Assembly: GCF_001194135.2 (NCBI RefSeq) | Contig: NC_069004.1 | Location: 20,191,029 to 20,255,028 of the forward strand | Source: Octopus bimaculoides | Taxonomy: Eukaryota | Direction of reading: 5' to 3' | DNA length: 64,000 nucleotides | Part shown: positions 19,801 to 59,805 of the stretch, one piece after another | Numbering within the stretch: the first letter of the stretch is position 1 | Layout: each line of letters starts with the position of its first letter | Position numbers and translations under genes: made by a program | The notes under the pieces: generated by a model | What the model was told of the DNA's origin: nothing | The model's database searches: none | Seen by the model: only the letters and a program-made list of their open reading frames with translations

Positions 19801-22523
19801 AGACATGTCATGCATATGAATGAAGACAGCAGCATAAAGTGCTGATCACTTAGATGTAGATGAATCTTGTGGTAGAGGGAGACATGGGATGAAATGGTGA
19901 TGGTTGATCTTGGGACCTTGAATCTCATACAGATGACAAAGAATATGGATGATTGGTGATATGCAGTTCTAAAGATCCACCCACTTTGCTCAAACTGAGT
20001 TCCGGAAGCACCACTTGCACATAAATATGCATGACTGAGTTATTCACTCAACTTCCTCCTCAAGATGTTCCCATTAACCATCCTGTCTAACTGCAGCTCA
20101 TCCTTGATAGCATTTCCACCACTACTATACATCTCTCATTCTACTCTTGCATTATGCTTGCCTCTCTGTCTTGCATTTTCTTTGATAAACTTCCCAACCA
20201 TTTCTTGTCCTTTCCATGTCGACTGTACCATCACAACTATTTCACTGCTCTCACCACTTCGTTTTGGCAGTCACTCATTCCCTACCCACTCCTATTCATG
20301 TATTATTAGTCATGCTCACCTTTTATCTACCATTCACTAGCCTCCCCCCCAACCCTACTCAATCTTTAAAGTTATTATCTACCTCTCACCCATTCTCAAT
20401 CCCCCCACCCCACCCCGATACACTCTTGCAACCTCCAAACACCTACATTCCTGGTTCTTCTAACTTCATTACTTCCACCCAGACACCTCATTACTACCAT
20501 TATCTCTTTCCAGCTCCACCTGATCACCCCAACTGCCTTTTCTAAAATATGAGAAGTCATGTAGTTCCTTTACAGCAAGAANNNNNNNNNNNNNNNNNNN
20601 NNNNNNNNNNNNNNNNNNNNNNNNNNNNNNNNNNNNNNNNNNNNNNNNNNNNNNNNNNNNNNNNNNNNNNNNNNNNNNNNNNNNNNCCAACTGCCTTTTC
20701 TAAAATATGAGAAGTCATGTAGTTCCTTTACAGCAAGAAACCTGTACTGCTCAGGTTTCTTCTTTCATACTTTAAACCTTCATCTTCTAGCACAACCCTT
20801 GCCCCTTGGGGTTAAGTCTTGTAAACTGTGTGGTGACCTTACTGGTGCTGATACCATGAAAAACTGCACCCTCTAAACACTGTAAAGTGGTTGGCATTAG
20901 GAAGGGCATCCACCTGTAGGAACCATGCCAAAGTTGACACCAGAGCATGATGCTGTCTTTGAACCCATTAGATCTTGTCAAACCAACCAGGTCATGCTAG
21001 CATAGAATATGGATGTTAAATGGTGTAAGTTTTAATCATAGATTATGAAATCAATTGAATATCACTTTAAATGCACACTTTTTCCAGCATATAATAAGTT
21101 GTAAATGAAGCTTCTCTCAAGTTAAATTCTTGAACAAACAGCCACATGGTTCAGAAATTTGCTTTCATTTTGACTAAGTAGCACTTTAGGCAAGTGTGTT
21201 TTTACTATAGTTGTAGACTACTCAATGCTTCATGTGTAACAGAAACTCTTCACAAGCCTTATGTGTACATATAGGCTTACTGGTGGTAAACCATACACTA
21301 GTTGATCCTTTTAGGCCAAAAGTTAAAACTCCACAATTTGTTCAGCCAGTGAGAGCTTTTATAGTTCTAGATAATGATGCCTGAAAACAAAGTGGGGTGG
21401 TCACAGATGACCACTTTCTTTAAATTGTATGTGATTCTCTTGACAGTTTCAATGATTATACTATAATTTGATTTCTGCTGATTTTTTCTAGATAGGAATA
21501 AAGAGAGAATTATAAAGTTGTAATGTTCACATCTTTTCCTCAAAAGAATATAAATGAAACAAAACAGCTTCAGCTTAGAATAATAAACAGGTTATTGAAC
21601 TGGATTTACAAAAAACTCCACATTTGTCAAGAACATGACTTGTTTATATCTTTTGTTTCAGTCATTAGACTGTGGCCATCACCTTGAATTTTTAATTTGA
21701 ATGAATGAATCAACCCCCAGTATTTTTTTTTTAAGCCTGGTACTTATTCTTCTTATTTTGTGTGTGTGCACACACACAAAATTTGGTGAAATATGTAGGT
21801 TGTTAGTTATGAAATGGAATGTACAGTGAGTAGCAAAAGTGCCAGTAGCATTGTTGACAATTATCCAACAAAACAATTCAGTAAAAGTAAGCAGCACCAA
21901 CTGTTTGTGGGGAAATCATATTTGTATATTTTTGCATAGTTAATTTGCAATGATGTGAGCCATATAACTTAAATGAATTGTTTCTTTAGTTTATGAAATA
22001 GCTCTTTTGGTTTATTGCATTTTCAATCTTTCTGAAGACTGGTTAAATCCAAAAACTCAGGTATTTAGAACTTTATAACTGAATGCTAACTTGTGAAGAT
22101 GGAGTAATGTCCCTTCTCATTCAGTATGCTATATTTGCACTTTGGTTTGATAATAAAAAGCCCATTTTATTGAGTTTGTTGTGAAATGGCAACATTTTTC
22201 TTTGATAATTTTTTGGTGATCTTGCACTGTTTTTTTTTCTTTTGATAGCTTTAATTTCGGTTATAACTTTCATATTTTGCTTCCATTAAAAAGTAAACCT
22301 ACTCAATCAGTGCATGTACAAAATTAAGGTATACTCATTTTCTCATTGAAAAAGCTTAGGTAGATATATAAACTTATGAAAAGACAAAAAGAAGAAAAGT
22401 TTAAAATCTTACTTCAATGAATTTATCCAAGGTCCCATCTGTTGGCCGGTCCATTATCAGAAACCTCATATGTTTGTGAGAAATTTCAGCAGGTTCAGGC
22501 TTTATGGCCCTTGTAGCTCTCAT
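10713..22523 (-). CDS. PTP4A1: PRL-family protein tyrosine phosphatase type IVA (PRL-1-like), 5 coding exons, 172 aa
   Basis: Spliced translation: [172 protein letters not shown]. Exons of 111+93+131+75+109 nt join in frame with GT-AG junctions. Hallmark PRL motifs are [18 protein letters not shown], polybasic tail and CCxx. The symbol denotes the family: an invertebrate PRL would be co-orthologous to PTP4A1/2/3. Confidence 0.96.
12235..12309 (-). CDS. PTP4A1: PRL coding exon 4: (R)[24 protein letters not shown](T)
   Basis: Acceptor TTTTCTTTCAG, donor GTTAGT, 75 nt, phase 2/2. Confidence 0.95.
12720..13170 (+). mobile_element. Pyrimidine-rich body plus RTE-type tail (non-autonomous composite repeat)
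   Basis: C/T-rich tract, then linker TTGTCTTGCAAGTTACTTGGTGA (13046-13068), then AAGCACCCAGTACAC...GGAAGGGCATC...AGAAACCATGCCAAAG. Confidence 0.55.
13846..13976 (-). CDS. PTP4A1: PRL coding exon 3 (catalytic): [43 protein letters not shown](R)
   Basis: Acceptor TTTGTTTTTACAG, donor GTATGC, 131 nt. Lies within the ORF 13752-14009. Confidence 0.97.
14950..15284 (+). mobile_element. Old SINE copy: dominant-family head and core joined to an RTE-like tail
   Basis: GGTTTCATGTTCAGGTCCACAGCATGGTAC...CTACTACAGCCCCAGGCTGAACAAAGTC aligns with the SINE core at 27420-27500. The 3' end AAAGGACATCTGGCCATAGAAA...GATGCTAAAACAATGAT resembles the RTE tail. Confidence 0.5.
15285..16485 (+). mobile_element. Mariner (Tc1/mariner) transposon, near full length, degenerate
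   Basis: Imperfect ~33-bp TIRs TATGAGGTGGTATCAAAAAGTTCCTGGACTAGT and ACTAGCCTGGGAACTCCTTTGTACATCAACATA. Transposase remnants [22 protein letters not shown] and [20 protein letters not shown]...[22 protein letters not shown]. Confidence 0.88.
17040..17790 (+). mobile_element. Pyrimidine-rich body plus decayed RTE-type tail (composite repeat)
   Basis: C/T-rich tract, motif GGGTAGCCATGTATTCTCATTAGCAAGACACC (17530-17561), linker TCTTGCAAGTCGTTTGGCA, then ACACTGTAAAGTGGTTG. Confidence 0.5.
17830..18408 (+). mobile_element. Tc1/mariner-superfamily (maT/DD37D-like) transposase 3' fragment
   Basis: [11 protein letters not shown] motif followed by [18 protein letters not shown]...[13 protein letters not shown]. 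Possible terminal ...ACTGTA|TA. Confidence 0.7.
18921..19013 (-). CDS. PTP4A1: PRL coding exon 2: [31 protein letters not shown]
   Basis: Acceptor TTTTTTATGTTGCAG, donor GTAAGT, 93 nt, phase 0/0. Confidence 0.96.
19345..19980 (+). mobile_element. Old RTE LINE fragment (RT C-terminus with PHD-like segment)
   Basis: [35 protein letters not shown]...SFVCDRC. Heavily decayed homolog of 30810-31690. Confidence 0.75.
20040..21025 (+). mobile_element. Pyrimidine-rich body plus RTE-type tail (composite repeat), interrupted by an N gap
   Basis: C/T-rich 20040-20580. Tail ACACTGTAAAGTGGTTGGCATTAGGAAGGGCATCC...CATAGAATATGGATGTTAAATG. Confidence 0.5.
22413..22523 (-). CDS. PTP4A1: PRL coding exon 1 (CDS part): [37 protein letters not shown]
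   Basis: ATG at 22523 in context ATTACCATGA. Donor GTAAGA. Homologous to the PRL N-terminus (RPAPVEV...MRFLI..NPT). Confidence 0.93.
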
Positions 22524-22719
22524 GGTAATTTATTGTTTGGTCGATGTATGGAATTGACAATAAGAAAAATAATTAGAGCAAACAGCTCTGCAATCCTGCC
22601 AAAATGGTGGTTACTGAAAGAAATCCACCACAAAAATTGGTGGATCAGTAAGAGCACCTGTTTTTGGTTTCTAAGCACCTAGTAGTGGTTAAGGATCGAC
22701 AGTTGGGTACGCTCCCCAG

Positions 22720-22806
22720 CTAGCTGCTGTCTAGCTGTACATCCACTGTAGTTATCCAGTAAAAAGAGAGAAGAGTGAGTACGTTGAAAGCACAAGCTAT
22801 CGCCAT
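22720..22806 (-). promoter_or_regulatory. uORF (28 aa, MAIACAFNVLTLLSFYWITTVDVQLDSS*) in the PRL leader
   Basis: Read directly from the sequence: ATG GCG ... TAG, G at +4. A nested out-of-frame micro-uORF MYS* starts at 22742. Confidence 0.55.
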
Positions 22807-22943
22807 CCAAAAACTCTTCTATCACAAACACTTCAACAGCAAACTTTACGTGATGGAAGGCGCAACAGATTCAAAACTGTCTCCAGTTGTTTTAGAAGTT
22901 TACTTGTTTTCACTTCAGTTGAAACACAGCACTAACACCACTA

Positions 22944-22994
22944 TTACACGTGTTGCGCCTGGCAGAAATCTCCACTGTTGGTCACAAACTCCAT
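22944..22994 (-). promoter_or_regulatory. uORF (16 aa, MEFVTNSGDFCQAQHV*) in the PRL leader
   Basis: Read directly from the sequence: ATG GAG ... TAA, 27 nt after the proximal acceptor. Confidence 0.5.
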
Positions 22995-24232
22995 AAATGT
23001 ATGACCGAATTCACCAAAGAACTGTAAAAAATAAAATCCACATAGAATTTTTCTCTCTCCAATTTTAAACAAACATATTTACAGTTAAAAAATAAGAAAC
23101 TTTACAGAAAATGTGGAAGGAAGAAATTTATTGAAGAAAGATTAGTAGAAATAGCCATGCATTCCATCCTGTGAAATACAAAAATTAGTATCAGTAAGAC
23201 ACCAATATTAATTCAGTGAACTGAATCCTTTCCCCGAAAACAAAACAGAGCCTTGTCAATTAAGAAATAATTAAAAAAAAAGATCAATTTTGTTATATAA
23301 ATTTGAAATAATAGCAATAACTTCCACACTGTATTTAAAAATAGAATTACAAAAATTCTCATTGTTGGAATGTGAAACAACAAGTATACATTGTTTTAAC
23401 TAAGAGCTTACCCAACAATAGTGTTTTAGATTCCATATGGCTGTAATTTGGCTACTGTTTGGTATTTAGAAGATAACAAGTAAGTAGCAAGATAGATTAG
23501 GATACAAAGAACTGAGTCAGTCTAGTAGATGCATCATGTAAGAAAGATAATGTCAAAAGAAGTTTGAAAAGTAATATTTTAGGTTTGGTCATTCACCCGT
23601 CAGATAACAAACAACCAGAGATCATCCAAGTTCTATGATACAATTCTACTTTTTGCTATATCTCAGGAGTGGTGGTCAAGAATTTTGCAAACCAAATATT
23701 TTAATATTCCAAATTCCAGTATTATAATTTATTAGTTATTGTAGTAACCTTCCAAAATATTTTAGAAGTGAAATATATGGACAATAATGGTAATAAAAGG
23801 GACAAAATATGCTCAGGTTTTAGGAGCAAAATGAATCAGATTTTCCAAGTATCTGCAAAGATTACTAAATTTTTTGGAAGGTAATTCAAATTCTACTACA
23901 CAAAGTTCATTTTTAATTTCACTATTTACTCAATTTGGTCACCTTGAAAGAAAAATTTATGACAACCATATCTGGCAAACTTCAACAAAAGGAAAAAAAA
24001 AAAAACTTGAATATAGATGCACTCACGCACTACATATTAACATCCACTTTTCCAATATTTTTCTTTTAATTAAATTTTATTCAAACTACTACTATTTCTT
24101 AGCTACATTATATATGCTATCAGGTGAATGAAAAATTACTGTTTCTCACAAATTTTTGTGAGAATATATATTAAAATATATTCTTACAGAATATATTATA
24201 AATTTTAAAAAAATTACAAAAATACAGAATTA

Positions 24233-41460: not shown

Positions 41461-41869
41461 NNNNNNNNNNNNNNNNNNNNNNNNNNNNNNNNNNNNNNNN
41501 NNNNNNNNNNNNNNNNNNNNNNNNNNNNNNNNNNNNNNNNNNNNNNNNNNNNNNNNNNNNNNNNNNNNNNNNNNNNNNNNNNNNNNNNNNNNNNNNNNNN
41601 NNNNNNNNNNNNNNNNNNNNNNNNNNNNNNNNNNNNNNNNNNNNNNNNNNNNNNNNNNNNNNNNNNNNNNNNNNNNNNNNNNNNNNNNNNNNNNNNNNNN
41701 NNNNNNNNNNNNNNNNNNNNNNNNNNNNNNNNNNNNNNNNNNNNNNNNNNNNNNNNNNNNNNNNNNNNNNNNNNNNNNNNNNNNNNNNNNNNNNNNNNNN
41801 NNNNNNNNNNNNNNNNNNNNNNNNNNNNNNNNNNNNNNNNNNNNNNNNNNNNNNNNNNNNNNNNNNNNT

Positions 41870-42419: not shown

Positions 42420-44263
42420 TAGATTAACAGTATGCTCCGATGGATGTGTAATGTCAGTGTGCATACTAGACAGAGTATCAGTACCTTGAGAGAAAAGTTG
42501 AATTTACGAAGCATCAGTTGTGGTGTGCAAGAGAGACGATTGCGCTGGTGTGGTCATGTAGTGAGAATGGATGAGGATAGCTGTGTGAAAAAGTGCCACA
42601 CTTTAGCAGTTGAGGGAACCTGCGGAAGAGGTAGGCCCAGAAAGACCTGGGATGAGGTGGTGAGGCACGACCTTCGAACATTGGGCCTCACCGAGGCGAT
42701 GACTTCTGACAGAGACCTTTGGAAATATGCTGTGTGTGAGAAGACCCGGCAAGCCAAGTGAGACCTAAAATCTATGGCCTCAGCCAGTCCACTTATACGT
42801 ACCTTCCTTCATTGGACACCAAACTCCACTTGCGAAGACCTGTTGAGGCAAGTGAAATCAAAATCGAGTTAAATTGGATACTAAGCTCCACTTGCGAAGA
42901 CCTGTTGAGGCAAGTGNNNNNNNNNNNNNNNNNNNNNNNNNNNNNNNNNNNNNNNNNNNNNNNNNNNNNNNNNNNNNNNNNNNNNNNNNNNNNNNNNNNN
43001 NNNNNNNNNNNNNNNNNNNNNNNNNNNNNNNNNNNNNNNNNNNNNNNNNNNNNNNNNNNNNNNNNNNNNNNNNNNNNNNNNNNNNNNNNNNNNNNNNNNN
43101 NNNNNNNNNNNNNNNNNNNNNNNNNNNNNNNNNNNNNNNNNNNNNNNNNNNNNNNNNNNNNNNNNNNNNNNNNNNNNNNNNNNNNNNNNNNNNNNNNNNN
43201 NNNNNNNNNNNNNNNNNNNNNNNNNNNNNNNNNNNNNNNNNNNNNNNNNNNNNNNNNNNNNNNNNNNNNNNNNNNNNNNNNNNNNNNNNNNNNNNNNNNN
43301 NNNNNNNNNNNNNNNNNNNNNNNNNNNNNNNNNNNNNNNNNNNNNNNNNNNNNNNNNNNNNNNNNNNNNNNNNNNNNNNNNNNNNNNNNNNNNNNNNNNN
43401 NNNNNNNNNNNNNNNNNNNNNNNNNNNNNNNNNNNNNNNNNNNNNNNNNNNNNNNNNNNNNNNNNNNNNNNNNNNNNNNNNNNNNNNNNNNNNNNNNNNN
43501 NNNNNNNNNNNNNNNNNNNNNNNNNNNNNNNNNNNNNNNNNNNNNNNNNNNNNNNNNNNNNNNNNNNNNNNNNNNNNNNNNNNNNNNNNNNNNNNNNNNN
43601 NNNNNNNNNNNNNNNNNNNNNNNNNNNNNNNNNNNNNNNNNNNNNNNNNNNNNNNNNNNNNNNNNNNNNNNNNNNNNNNNNNNNNNNNNNNNNNNNNNNN
43701 NNNNNNNNNNNNNNNNNNNNNNNNNNNNNNNNNNNNNNNNNNNNNNNNNNNNNNNNNNNNNNNNNNNNNNNNNNNNNNNNNNNNNNNNNNNNNNNNNNNN
43801 NNNNNNNNNNNNNNNNNNNNNNNNNNNNNNNNNNNNNNNNNNNNNNNNNNNNNNNNNNNNNNNNNNNNNNNNNNNNNNNNNNNNNNNNNNNNNNNNNNNN
43901 NNNNNNNNAGGATTTTCAAGCGAGATCATTGCCAGTGCTACTGGACTGGCTCATGTGCGGGTGACATGAAATTTTTCGAGCAAGATCGTTACCAGTGCCC
44001 CTGGACTGGCTCTTGTTTGGGTGGCACATAAAATGCATCATTTTGAGTGTGGCTGTTGCCAGTACCGCCTGACTGGCCTTCGTGCGGGTGACACGTAAAA
44101 GCACCCACTACACTCTGTGTGGTTGGCGTTGGGAAGGGCATCCAGCTGTAGAAACTCTGCCAAATCAGATTGGAGCCTGGTGTAACCATCTGGTTTCACC
44201 AGTCCTCAGTCAAATCATCCAACCCATGCTAGCATGGAAAGCGGACGTTAAACGATGATGATG
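42420..44263 (+). mobile_element. RTE LINE 3' portion (post-RT ORF end plus 3'UTR), spanning a ~1 kb N gap
   Basis: MLRWMCNVSVHTRQS...RLRWCGHVVRMDEDSCVKKC...GRGRPRKTWDEVV. Complete tail GCATGGAAAGCGGACGTTAAACGATGATGATG. Confidence 0.9.
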
Positions 44264-55544: not shown

Positions 55545-58500
55545 GCAATAGGGGTGGGAAATTTCACAAGATCTGGGTTTTTCCTTCATAACTTATAGGA
55601 AATTTTGTTTTTTTTTTTAAATTAAATTTTATATAATTACCTTTCAACCGGCATAGATTATGATTATGAAGAAGTTTGTGGGAAAATATTTTCCAAGGTG
55701 TAAGGAGAAGACTTCGGAAAATTTACAAGATCCAAGTTTTTCGCCCATAACTTGCTGACAGTTTATCATGGATAGCAGGTATAAATCCAAATTTTAAATA
55801 TTCCTCTGAATATTGACAAACTTTTTTACTTGTACTACTCGTTTTATGTATTTTTGAATTGGCATAACTATAGATTTCTGTGCCCCTGACTTTGGATGAT
55901 CATAACTTTCAGAAAAATGGAAATTTTTTAATGAAATTGTCTATGAATATGTGTTATGTAGATTGTAGATTCCAAAAAAAGCTCAAACGTGGAATTATTC
56001 CATTCAATATCATGTTTATTATAGAGATTATGCAACAAATTATGCTTTACACTTCTATATTTAACTGTGCATGTATATTCCTTATTTTTGCTTCTGGTGT
56101 CGGAAAGATTTCCTCCCACCCCACCCCATTTTCTCGCAAAGTATTGTTCTTTGCATTTTTTTTTTTGCCAAAAATCCACCTTTTCGGATAGATTCTGGAA
56201 AATTGCCAGAAATCGGAATTTTTAAATTGGACGATTTGACTGGGGACTGGCGAACCAGATGGCTACACCAGGCTCCAATCTGATTTGGCAGAATTTCTAC
56301 AGCTGGATGCCCTTCCTAACACCAACTCCGAGAGTGTAGTGGGTGCTTTTACATGCCACCGGCACTAAGGCCAGTCAGGCGGTACTGGCAACGGCCACGC
56401 TCAAAATGGTGTATTTTACGTGCCACCTGCACAGGAGTCAGTCCAGTGGCACTGGCAACGATCTCGCTCGAATGTTTTTTCACGTGCCACTGGCACAAGT
56501 GCCAGTAAGGCGACGCTGGTAACGATCACGCTCAAATGGTGCTATTTACGTGCCAATGGCATGGAAACCAGACAGCTGCTCTGGCAATGATCATACTCGG
56601 ACGGTGCTCTTAGCACTCCACTGGCACAGATGCCCCAACAGGTCTTCGCAAGCTGAGTTTAGTGTCCAATGAAGGAGAGGTTGGTATGAGTGTCAGTCAT
56701 CGAATTTGGTTCGATTTCGATTTCACTTGCCTCAACAGGTTTTTGCAAGTGGAGTTTAGTGTCCAATGAAGGAAAGGTACACATAAGTGGGCTGGCTACA
56801 CCCCTGGCAGAGGCCTCGGATTATGGTCTCACTTGACTTGCCGGGTCTTCTCATGTACAGCATATTTCCAAAGGTCTTGGTCACAAGTCATTGCCTCGGT
56901 GAGGCCTAATCTTCGAAGGTCATGCTTCATCACCTCATCCTAGGTCTTCATGGGTCTACCTCTTCCACAAGTTCCTTCAACCGCTAGGGTGTGGAAATTT
57001 TTCACACAGCTATCCTCATCCATTCTCGCCACATGACCATACCAGCACAATCGTCTCTCTTGCACACCACAACTGATGCTTTTTAGGTTCAACTTTTCTC
57101 TCAAGGGATTACACACTGTCGAGTATGCACACTGACATTACACATCCATCAGAGCATACTGGTATCATTCCTTGCTAGCTTACGCATGTCCTCAGCTGTC
57201 ACGGCCCATGTTTCACTGCCATGTAGCATGGCTGTTCGTACACATGCATCATACAGTCTGCCTTTTACTCTGAGCGAGAGGCCCTTTGTCACCAGCAGAG
57301 GTAAGAGCTCTCTGAACTTTGCCCAGGCTATTCTTATTCTAGCAGCTACACTTTCAGCACCCCCCCCCTACTAATTTGGTCACCTAGATAATGGAAGCTA
57401 TCAACTGCATCTAGTTTTTCTCTCTGGAATGTGGCAGAAGTTGTTTTCTGCACATTTTCAGTGTTTATTGCTCCTGAACATACAAAAACTAACTTCCCAG
57501 TTAGCCTTCCTTTGAAATTGCTGCACCTCTTATGTGTCCAGCAGGGCCATTTACCTGAAGGGGTTTGTGTTTTGTTTACCTCCCTACTTATTAGGACTTT
57601 GGTTTTAGCTAGGTTGACTCTAAGGCCCTTCGATTCTAGTCCTTGCTTCCTCACCTGAAACTTCTCTAGTTCTGATAGTGACTCAGCAATTAGCGCAAGG
57701 TCATCAGCATAGAGGAGCCCCCAGAGGCATCCTGTCTTGAATTCCTGTGTTATTGACTGGAGGACTATGATAAATAGGAGGGGGCTGAGGACTGAACCTT
57801 GGTGGACCCCTACCTCTACCCAGAATTCTTCACTGTACTTGTCTTCAACCCTCACCTTACTGACAGCGTCTCTGTACATGGCTCACACAGCTCTCACTAA
57901 CCATTCTTCTATCCCTAGTTTCCTCATTGACCACCAGATAAGGAATCAGGGGACCCTGACAAAAGCTTTCTCCATGTCAATGAAAGCCAGATACAGAGGT
58001 TTATCTTTGGCTAGGTATTTCTCCTGCAGCTGTCTTACCAGAAATATAGCATCAGTGGTGCTTTTCCCTGGCACAAACCCAAACTGCATCTCATCTACAC
58101 TGACTCTCTCCCTAATTAGTTGGGATATGACCCTCTCCTTGACCTTCATTACTTGGTCCATCAACTTGATACCTCTGTAATTATTTGTATCTAAAGTGTC
58201 ACCTTTACCTTTGTAGCAATTGACTATGGTGCTGCTACACTAGTCATTGGGTATGACTCCTTCGTGTATCACCTGGTTAACAATACGAGTGACTAGGCTA
58301 TAGCCGACACTGCCAGATATTTTGAGCATCTCTGCAGTGATTCCTGATGGGCTGGGGACTTTCCCTGTCTTCATACTCTTAGTTGCTTTATCTACCACGG
58401 TACTGTCAACTTGGATAGCTGGTCCCTCTGTTGGGTCGATATTCGGCAGACTCTTTTTCTCCCATTCATTCTCTTTATTGAGCAAACTTTCATAGTGGCG

Positions 58501-59180: not shown

Positions 59181-59805
59181 NNNNNNNNNNNNNNNNNNNN
59201 NNNNNNNNNNNNNNNNNNNNNNNNNNNNNNNNNNNNNNNNNNNNNNNNNNNNNNNNNNNNNNNNNNNNNNNNNNNNNNNNNNNNNNNNNNNNNNNNNNNN
59301 NNNNNNNNNNNNNNNNNNNNNNNNNNNNNNNNNNNNNNNNNNNNNNNNNNNNNNNNNNNNNNNNNNNNNNNNNNNNNNNNNNNNNNNNNNNNNNNNNNNN
59401 NNNNNNNNNNNNNNNNNNNNNNNNNNNNNNNNNNNNNNNNNNNNNNNNNNNNNNNNNNNNNNNNNNNNNNNNNNNNNNNNNNNNNNNNNNNNNNNNNNNN
59501 NNNNNNNNNNNNNNNNNNNNNNNNNNNNNNNNNNNNNNNNNNNNNNNNNNNNNNNNNNNNNNNNNNNNNNNNNNNNNNNNNNNNNNNNNNNNNNNNNNNN
59601 NNNNNNNNNNNNNNNNNNNNNNNNNNNNNNNNNNNNNNNNNNNNNNNNNNNNNNNNNNNNNNNNNNNNNNNNNNNNNNNNNNNNNNNNNNNNNNNNNNNN
59701 NNNNNNNNNNNNNNNNNNNNNNNNNNNNNNNNNNNNNNNNNNNNNNNNNNNNNNNNNNNNNNNNNNNNNNNNNNNNNNNNNNNNNNNNNNNNNNNNNNNN
59801 NNNNN

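Follow-up and report, generated by a model that had tools for sequence, protein, structure and literature searches.

PRLs are oncogenic phosphatases that, with CNNM proteins, form an axis central to the regulation of cellular Mg2+. The human PRL-1 and PRL-2 leaders are described in PMC11855589 and PMC10083557 as repressing translation at abundant Mg2+ and releasing it on depletion, and the response of the human element is specific to Mg2+ among the divalent cations tested (Hardy 2023, PMC10083557). A uORF is required for this control: as recounted in PMC11855589 (section 5.1) and PMC10083557, rearranging its coding sequence while keeping the start and stop abolished Mg2+ sensitivity. The same two papers credit the Mg2+-sensitive uORF to Hardy et al. 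2019. We equate the uORF mutated in that study with the human PTP4A1 peptide P0310 (QFCGVLGHTFMEFLKGSGDYCQAQH) from these later papers and from annotation. For PTP4A1, PMC7530721 reports that a frameshift in the conserved-peptide uORF (CPuORF) raised reporter expression, relieving repression. The human PTP4A1 uORFs are translated, the mRNA resists eIF2 inhibition and the leader cuts reporter output about sevenfold (PMC4383229). Published conservation of the PRL uORF spans human to fish (PMC3914846), and PMC10083557 calls the element "evolutionarily conserved". Both the uORF family and its Mg2+ role are already known. Our literature search found no description of the uORF in molluscs or insects, though one may be listed in the supplementary tables of ESUCA (PMC7530721), which used a Lophotrochozoa category; the search also found none of a shared intron position, a cephalopod cassette exon or extra cephalopod uORFs, and the peptide strings gave no full-text literature match.

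The PTP4A leader in the mature mRNA

We analyzed a window of 64,000 nt from Octopus bimaculoides, whose minus strand carries the PTP4A (PRL) gene; all features below are on that strand. Using tblastn with human PRL-1 as the query, we found five coding segments: segment 1 (22523..22413, 37 aa), segment 2 (19013-18921), segment 3 (13976-13846), segment 4 (12309-12235) and segment 5 (10821-10713, stop included), delimited by GT-AG boundaries and aligned by transcripts. Their joined translation and XP_014788637 (O. bimaculoides protein tyrosine phosphatase type IVA 2) are identical. The main PRL AUG is at 22523 in the context ACCATGA, with the leader in the same exon. This exon opens after an AG acceptor, tattttttacag|TTCTTTGG, and since its first base is 23021, its leader portion measures 498 nt (23021-22524), close to the roughly 500 nt proposed in an earlier note on this DNA. 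The leader contains the three uATGs and ORFs described there, at 22994-22944 (MEFVTNSGDFCQAQHV), 22806-22720 (MAIACAFNVLTLLSFYWITTVDVQLDSS) and 22742 (MYS*). First-order Markov simulations with matched dinucleotide transitions predict 7.4 ATGs in a leader of this kind (P about 0.05 for the three observed), and the flanking introns contain 7-11 per 498 nt.

To place the leader in mRNA, RNA-seq-derived contigs were retrieved through the 90%-identity cluster of the octopus PRL protein. One of them, L023 (Logan SRR3401912), is an octopod transcript from an Octopus that is ~97% identical to the O. bimaculoides leader. Its nt 204-815 align without interruption to 23023-22412 at 97% identity, and its nt 124-205 match 54592-54511 at 100% identity; nt 1-123 have no match within the 64-kb window. 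Because L023 is continuous across the leader, all three uATGs are in the mature mRNA, and the possibility that the mRNA starts downstream of the uORFs is set aside. Transcripts of two decapodiform species match 23026-22691 (73-76% identity) and the PRL coding exons, with no alignment to introns or 3' UTR in the window, and the protein of one of them agrees with the Acanthosepion pharaonis model across their common stretch. Thus, transcription includes the leader, which is spliced onto upstream exons and shows unusual conservation from octopods to decapodiforms. A candidate acceptor, tttctttcag|TAACC (~22616), which would make the uORFs intronic, was ruled out by the octopod and decapodiform transcripts that run continuously through it.

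We compared the leaders of six cephalopods: O. bimaculoides, O. sinensis, the L023 octopod, Argonauta hians, and two decapodiforms. All six retain uATG1 and uATG2, and five retain uATG3, which Argonauta lacks; conservation among octopods, on which the earlier note had staked its proposal, is borne out for the first two.

uORF1 and its relation to the vertebrate PRL uORF

The 16-aa ORF at 22994-22944 is present as the earlier note described it, yet it is not a complete uORF. It is the portion of a longer frame, which we call uORF1, downstream of an invariant internal Met: reading back from MEFVTNSGDFCQAQHV, all octopod and decapodiform transcripts keep the frame open to the exon start and on into upstream exons. 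The exon-2 part of uORF1 (22944..23021) consists of 25 codons, FFGEFGHTFMEFVTNSGDFCQAQHV, followed by TAA. In the transcripts, the upstream exon provides ATG-TGC-AGA-AAT-AT[TA]-CTG, that is, MCRNIL, as the first six codons, with the start AUG lying in a weak context (ATCAATGT) within this otherwise non-coding exon. uORF1 comes in a short splice form of 31 aa, MCRNIL|FFGEFGHTFMEFVTNSGDFCQAQHV, and a long form of 58 aa that includes an 81-nt in-frame cassette (27 codons). It ends 420 nt before the PRL AUG (stop at 22944), in the same exon and with no overlap with the PRL ORF.

The alternative cassette exon is located at 54591-54511, with AG and GT flanks, and encodes DLLGGIVEKTDSPSTLAWPHHLCRSIK in frame with uORF1. 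It matches L023 nt 124-205 at 100% and the decapodiform exon at 90.6% identity, and its peptide is also found in the Argonauta model P0126. The exon sits 31.5 kb upstream of the first coding exon and carries an out-of-frame AUG (MASPSLQIN*). The scallop uORF has a longer cassette at the same place as the octopus one.

Searching the window for exon 1, which holds the uORF1 AUG, with a 25-nt pattern and up to 3 mismatches gave no match. A 12-nt BLAST match at 57456 was rejected as exon 1, as it falls in a LINE reverse-transcriptase fragment. Either a run of N conceals exon 1 or it lies beyond the upstream edge of the window, and we therefore infer the O. bimaculoides uORF1 start from L023, the 97%-identical congeneric transcript. 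The LINE-type fragment (~57380-57800) lies within the long first intron region of PRL and reads LSPLLFIIVLQSI ... LLYADDLALIAE. Assembly gaps at 41461-41868, 42917-43908, and 59181-59805, plus six shorter runs (2,467 N in total), break up the sequence on the upstream side of the cassette exon; small exons could be hidden in them. Outside the window, a small hairpin, TCGCT-N5-AGCGA, just upstream of the uORF1 AUG is common to cephalopods and scallop, with a C-G pair added in scallop, as is a nearly identical stretch, GCGATCAATGTG[CT]AGAAATAT[AT]CTG, near the same AUG (both at L023 nt 68-90, in exon 1 of L003 and L012, and at ~9960-9985 of L033).

A word-index search with the 58-aa uORF1 peptide matched three proteins: an Argonauta "hypothetical protein", a scallop protein MCRNIL...FFGELGHTFMEFVTNSGDYCQAQHAL, and P0128, a 43-aa protein from a Logan assembly with the same core. 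A profile built from these three was searched exhaustively against 1.84 billion representative proteins and returned 60 matches at E <= 1e-3. Most are vertebrate peptides of the form ...MSKHIPQFCGVLGHTFMEFLKGSGDYCQAQHDLYADK, with E values down to about 1e-9, and the cluster of one match contains the human 44-aa LOC128125822 / UniProt A0A3F2YNX1, annotated as "Protein tyrosine phosphatase 4A1". By BLASTP, the octopus 31-mer and the human peptide P0310 are identical at 17/24 positions (E 9e-13), and octopus uORF1 carries the core F.G..G.TFMEF...SGD.CQAQH.

The position and exon structure of the uORF are shared as well. In eight mammalian genomes, two exons separated by 3.9-6.4 kb encode the peptide, which ends ~350 nt before the 173-aa PRL-1 coding sequence; the chimpanzee uORF is split as MIRPQSSMSKHIP|gtgagt...aaacag|QFCGVLGH. 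A phase-0 intron follows the sixth codon in chimpanzee (MSKHIP|QFCG), in the octopod transcript (MCRNIL|(cassette)|FFGE), and in scallop (MCRNIL|gtaagt); in octopus, the acceptor side (23021) and the cassette are seen in the window and the rest in the octopod transcript. Molluscs and chimpanzee also share the weak start context TCAATG. Upstream of a PRL first coding exon, the motif is found in the scallop genome, where the uORF occupies three exons over 34.6 kb with the PRL AUG 1.2 kb beyond; in a marine metatranscriptome contig taken as gastropod, its PRL being most similar to those of land snails; in Elysia crispata, under the annotation "hypothetical protein"; in metagenome contigs assigned to an insect because their PRL exon is 91% identical to leafhopper PRL-1; and in two further invertebrate contigs.

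Given the sequence homology, the same leader position, and the same intron position, the reading of uORF1 as an orthologue of the vertebrate PTP4A1/2 CPuORF, homologous and not convergent, is well supported. The earlier note had left homology and convergence side by side, and its idea of a mammalian-like PRL uORF in a mollusc holds in the first sense. As a uORF shared by human and octopus PRL mRNA, the control element is, judged by this distribution, at least as old as bilaterian animals, and its presence in molluscs and an insect would make the control older than vertebrates. Recognizing uORF1 also corrects existing models that fuse the uORF to PRL or label it a hypothetical protein.

Public gene models fuse the uORF to PRL, in frame or frameshifted, creating spurious N-terminal extensions (P0028 of Acanthosepion pharaonis; P0141 of the shark Chiloscyllium punctatum, onto PRL-1; P0145 and P0159 of teleosts). 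In heterobranch-like gastropods, gene models and a transcript have no stop after CQAQH, and the uORF runs on to 142-234 aa (L039 nt 91-795; proteins P0253, P0254, and P0249).

The pattern of substitutions points to the peptide as the object of selection. The exon-2 peptide of uORF1 is identical in 6/6 cephalopods, and its 25 codons contain 11 variable sites, all at third positions and all synonymous, an outcome with a probability of order 1e-7 if about 1/4 of random single-base changes are synonymous. Synonymous changes at 11/11 sites are the signature of a translated, peptide-constrained ORF, and this synonymous-only variation is indirect evidence for translation of uORF1. Across 11 taxa, 12/24 core positions are invariant (G3, T8, M10, E11, F12, S16, G17, C20, Q21, A22, Q23, and H24). 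Judged from these alignments, the core F.G....T[FY]MEF...SG[DE].CQAQH is shown to be under strong amino-acid-level purifying selection.

A second signal lies in the codons themselves. Between octopus and gastropod, synonymous-site codon identity is 11/20 in the uORF core vs 33/110 in the PRL coding sequence (P 0.03); between octopus and decapodiform B, codon identity is 22/24 vs 108/151 (P 0.025). Ser16 is AGT and Gly17 is GGA in most cephalopods and in 5/5 non-cephalopod sequences, namely scallop, gastropod, insect, an invertebrate contig, and chimpanzee (L032, L033, L035, L038, and L039). This likeness at synonymous sites across phyla hints at a constraint on codons or RNA besides the peptide. 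The leader also folds somewhat better than its shuffles (z -1.95), but a predicted hairpin over the internal AUG lacks compensatory changes in Argonauta or chimpanzee, and Rfam covariance models, including those of bacterial Mg2+ leaders, gave only two chance-level matches in 22300-23200, far below gathering scores.

uORF2, uORF3, and the spacer

The 28-aa ORF, uORF2 (MAIACAFNVLTLLSFYWITTVDVQLDSS, 22720..22806), begins 135 nt past the uORF1 stop and does not overlap the PRL ORF. Its AUG is in a strong context (GGATGG), and this AUG, its context, and the segment MAI[AI]CAFN are kept in 6/6 cephalopod leaders. In the block VDVQLDS, octopus and decapodiform A differ by 5 synonymous and 0 non-synonymous changes; Argonauta uORF2 diverges past the eighth codon, with large low-complexity insertions. 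The earlier note had singled out the MAIxxAF segment of this ORF for comparison with the mammalian uORF. No counterpart is present in the chimpanzee, scallop, or gastropod leaders: tblastn for uORF2 homologues in scallop, gastropod, insect, and other loci gave chance-level matches only, and the corresponding interval of the chimpanzee leader has only a two-codon uORF. The alignment with the human uORF that the note proposed thus succeeds for uORF1 and leaves the 28-aa uORF without a partner. As uORF2 is found in cephalopods alone, we regard it as a cephalopod addition and not as the shared sensor.

uORF3 (22731..22742) is nested in uORF2 in another frame and is reduced to the remnant MYS* in O. 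bimaculoides. It is intact in decapodiforms and L023, where it encodes 19-20 aa of the form M[YF][SN]W...PTVDP..Y. Codon 4 is TAG in O. bimaculoides and O. sinensis vs TGG in L023, and the AUG is absent in Argonauta. Past the TAG, the block coding for "PTVDP" is still conserved at the nucleotide level (window 22731-22742 vs L023 nt 485-547).

From the uORF2 stop to the PRL AUG, the leader is free of AUGs, as the earlier note had it; this spacer (22524..22719) is 196 nt long where the note counted 197, and the distance is 216 nt when measured from the last uATG. Within the spacer, ~100 nt before the PRL AUG, lies a hairpin (22646-22622) of 9 bp with a loop of 7 nt. In the window the stem is CACC/GGTG, whereas O. 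sinensis has TGCC/GGTG with wobbles and L023 has TGCC/GGCA; pairing survives changes on both sides among these three Octopus sequences, with predicted energies of -8.8 to -12.9 kcal/mol.

A model for the octopus leader and its comparison with known systems

Taking these observations together, we think it probable that the octopus PRL leader carries a vertebrate-type CPuORF gating PRL translation by Mg2+, to which cephalopods have added uORFs. Mg2+ responsiveness of octopus uORF1 is inferred by analogy with the human element: the nascent uORF1 peptide would act in cis to hold ribosomes back, such that few ribosomes would reach the PRL AUG when Mg2+ is plentiful. A drop in intracellular Mg2+ would relieve the block and allow PRL to be made; PRL would then bind CNNM proteins and raise Mg2+, closing a feedback loop. 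In cephalopods, uORF2 with its strong Kozak context and the overlapping uORF3, truncated in O. bimaculoides, may form a second barrier, catching ribosomes that re-initiate or scan leakily, and re-initiation at the PRL AUG would be allowed by the 196-nt stretch free of AUGs. CQAQH lies 1-2 codons from the stop in most of the invertebrate sequences compared, 6 codons from it in vertebrates, and hundreds of codons from it in some gastropods, and such variation argues against a strictly termination-coupled stall.

The uORFs could instead repress PRL in response to a signal other than Mg2+, as part of general or stress control through eIF2-alpha phosphorylation or re-initiation efficiency. The resistance of human PTP4A1 mRNA, with its translated uORFs, to eIF2 inhibition and its ~sevenfold repressive leader (PMC4383229) are in keeping with such control, and the placement of a strong-context uORF2 135 nt past the uORF1 stop, followed by the 196-nt spacer, is a layout that suits it. 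However, simple re-initiation needs no amino-acid-level conservation of uORF1, uORF2 does not overlap the main ORF as the inhibitory ATF4 uORF does, and the response of the human orthologue, as noted above, is to Mg2+ specifically and not to the other divalent cations tested (PMC10083557). We consider this reading unlikely.

uORF1 might also encode a free-standing micropeptide that acts in trans from a bicistronic mRNA and is conserved for that function. Peptide-level conservation across Bilateria would be expected of such a product; annotation treats the human ORF as a protein-coding locus, the ORF reaches 166-234 aa in some gastropods, and the frame-preserving cassette exon changes its N-terminal part. 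Yet in every taxon examined the ORF and PRL remain physically linked, with the ORF ahead of PRL on one transcript, the conserved block of the ORF is only ~24 residues, near the capacity of the exit tunnel, and human reporters show peptide-dependent repression in cis (PMC7530721; PMC11855589). We find this reading quite unlikely, and the micropeptide and cis-control roles are compatible, not mutually exclusive. That the conserved feature is an RNA element (a structure or binding site) with an incidental reading frame seems very improbable despite the codon-level likeness and folding described above, since 11 third-position sites vary freely in cephalopods with the amino acids unchanged, no Rfam family matches, and, in human reporters, a PTP4A1 uORF frameshift relieved repression (PMC7530721) and loss of Mg2+ sensitivity followed when the uORF coding sequence was rearranged between an unchanged start and stop (PMC11855589).

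Beyond Mg2+ gating by uORF1, a more ambitious reading, which we hold to be rather unlikely as a whole, is that the PRL uORF is an ancestral bilaterian Mg2+ sensor with an intron fixed for >550 My, on which cephalopods have built a three-layer switch of cassette, extra uORFs, and codons or RNA. If so, inclusion of the 90%-conserved cassette would alter the sensing peptide (31 or 58 aa) in its N-terminal part, two more peptide-conserved uORFs would gate re-initiation, and the codon-level conservation (AGT-GGA-GAT...TGC-CAG) would mean that codons or RNA contribute to sensing. Tissues could then differ, through splicing, in the Mg2+ set-point of PRL translation. For work on the mechanism of the PRL uORF itself, the 12 invariant residues, the fixed intron position, and the weak start context narrow the set of residues worth mutating, and invertebrates offer new models and natural variants: tail-less uORFs, gastropod read-on, and the cassette exon.

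Among known systems, the human PTP4A1/PTP4A2 CPuORF (LOC128125822, MIRPQSSMSKHIPQFCGVLGHTFMEFLKGSGDYCQAQHDLYADK) is closest to octopus uORF1. The two reside in the same host gene family, stop 350-420 nt before the main AUG, have a phase-0 intron after the sixth codon (counting from the Met of MSKHIP or MCRNIL), and start in the weak context TCAATG; the human core agrees with octopus at 17/24 positions and has all the pan-bilaterian invariant residues. They differ in that the mollusc peptide ends 1-2 residues past CQAQH and lacks the vertebrate C-terminal tail DLYADK, that cephalopods and scallop have an extra in-frame cassette exon, and that cephalopods have two additional conserved uORFs downstream of uORF1. 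The TRPM7 uORFs (Nikonorova et al. 2014, PMC4227784) likewise control a Mg2+ homeostasis gene and are induced at low Mg2+, but the gene is different and, in the summary given in PMC11855589, competition between uORF and main ORF is described.

Peptide-dependent ribosome-arrest uORFs include AMD1 MAGDIS, the fungal arginine attenuator peptide, and the plant sucrose-control bZIP11 uORF2, in which a conserved nascent peptide reads the level of a small molecule or ion through a block of about exit-tunnel length near the C-terminus. Their sequences are unrelated to octopus uORF1, for which stalling is putative. The ATF4 and GCN4 leaders also have serial uORFs with spacers long enough for re-initiation. 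In contrast to their short permissive uORFs, octopus uORF1 has 31 or 58 codons and is conserved as a peptide. The octopus leader has neither the overlapping inhibitory uORF nor the very short series that mark the ATF4/GCN4 type: unlike in ATF4, no uORF overlaps the PRL ORF, and uORF2 ends 196 nt before the PRL AUG.
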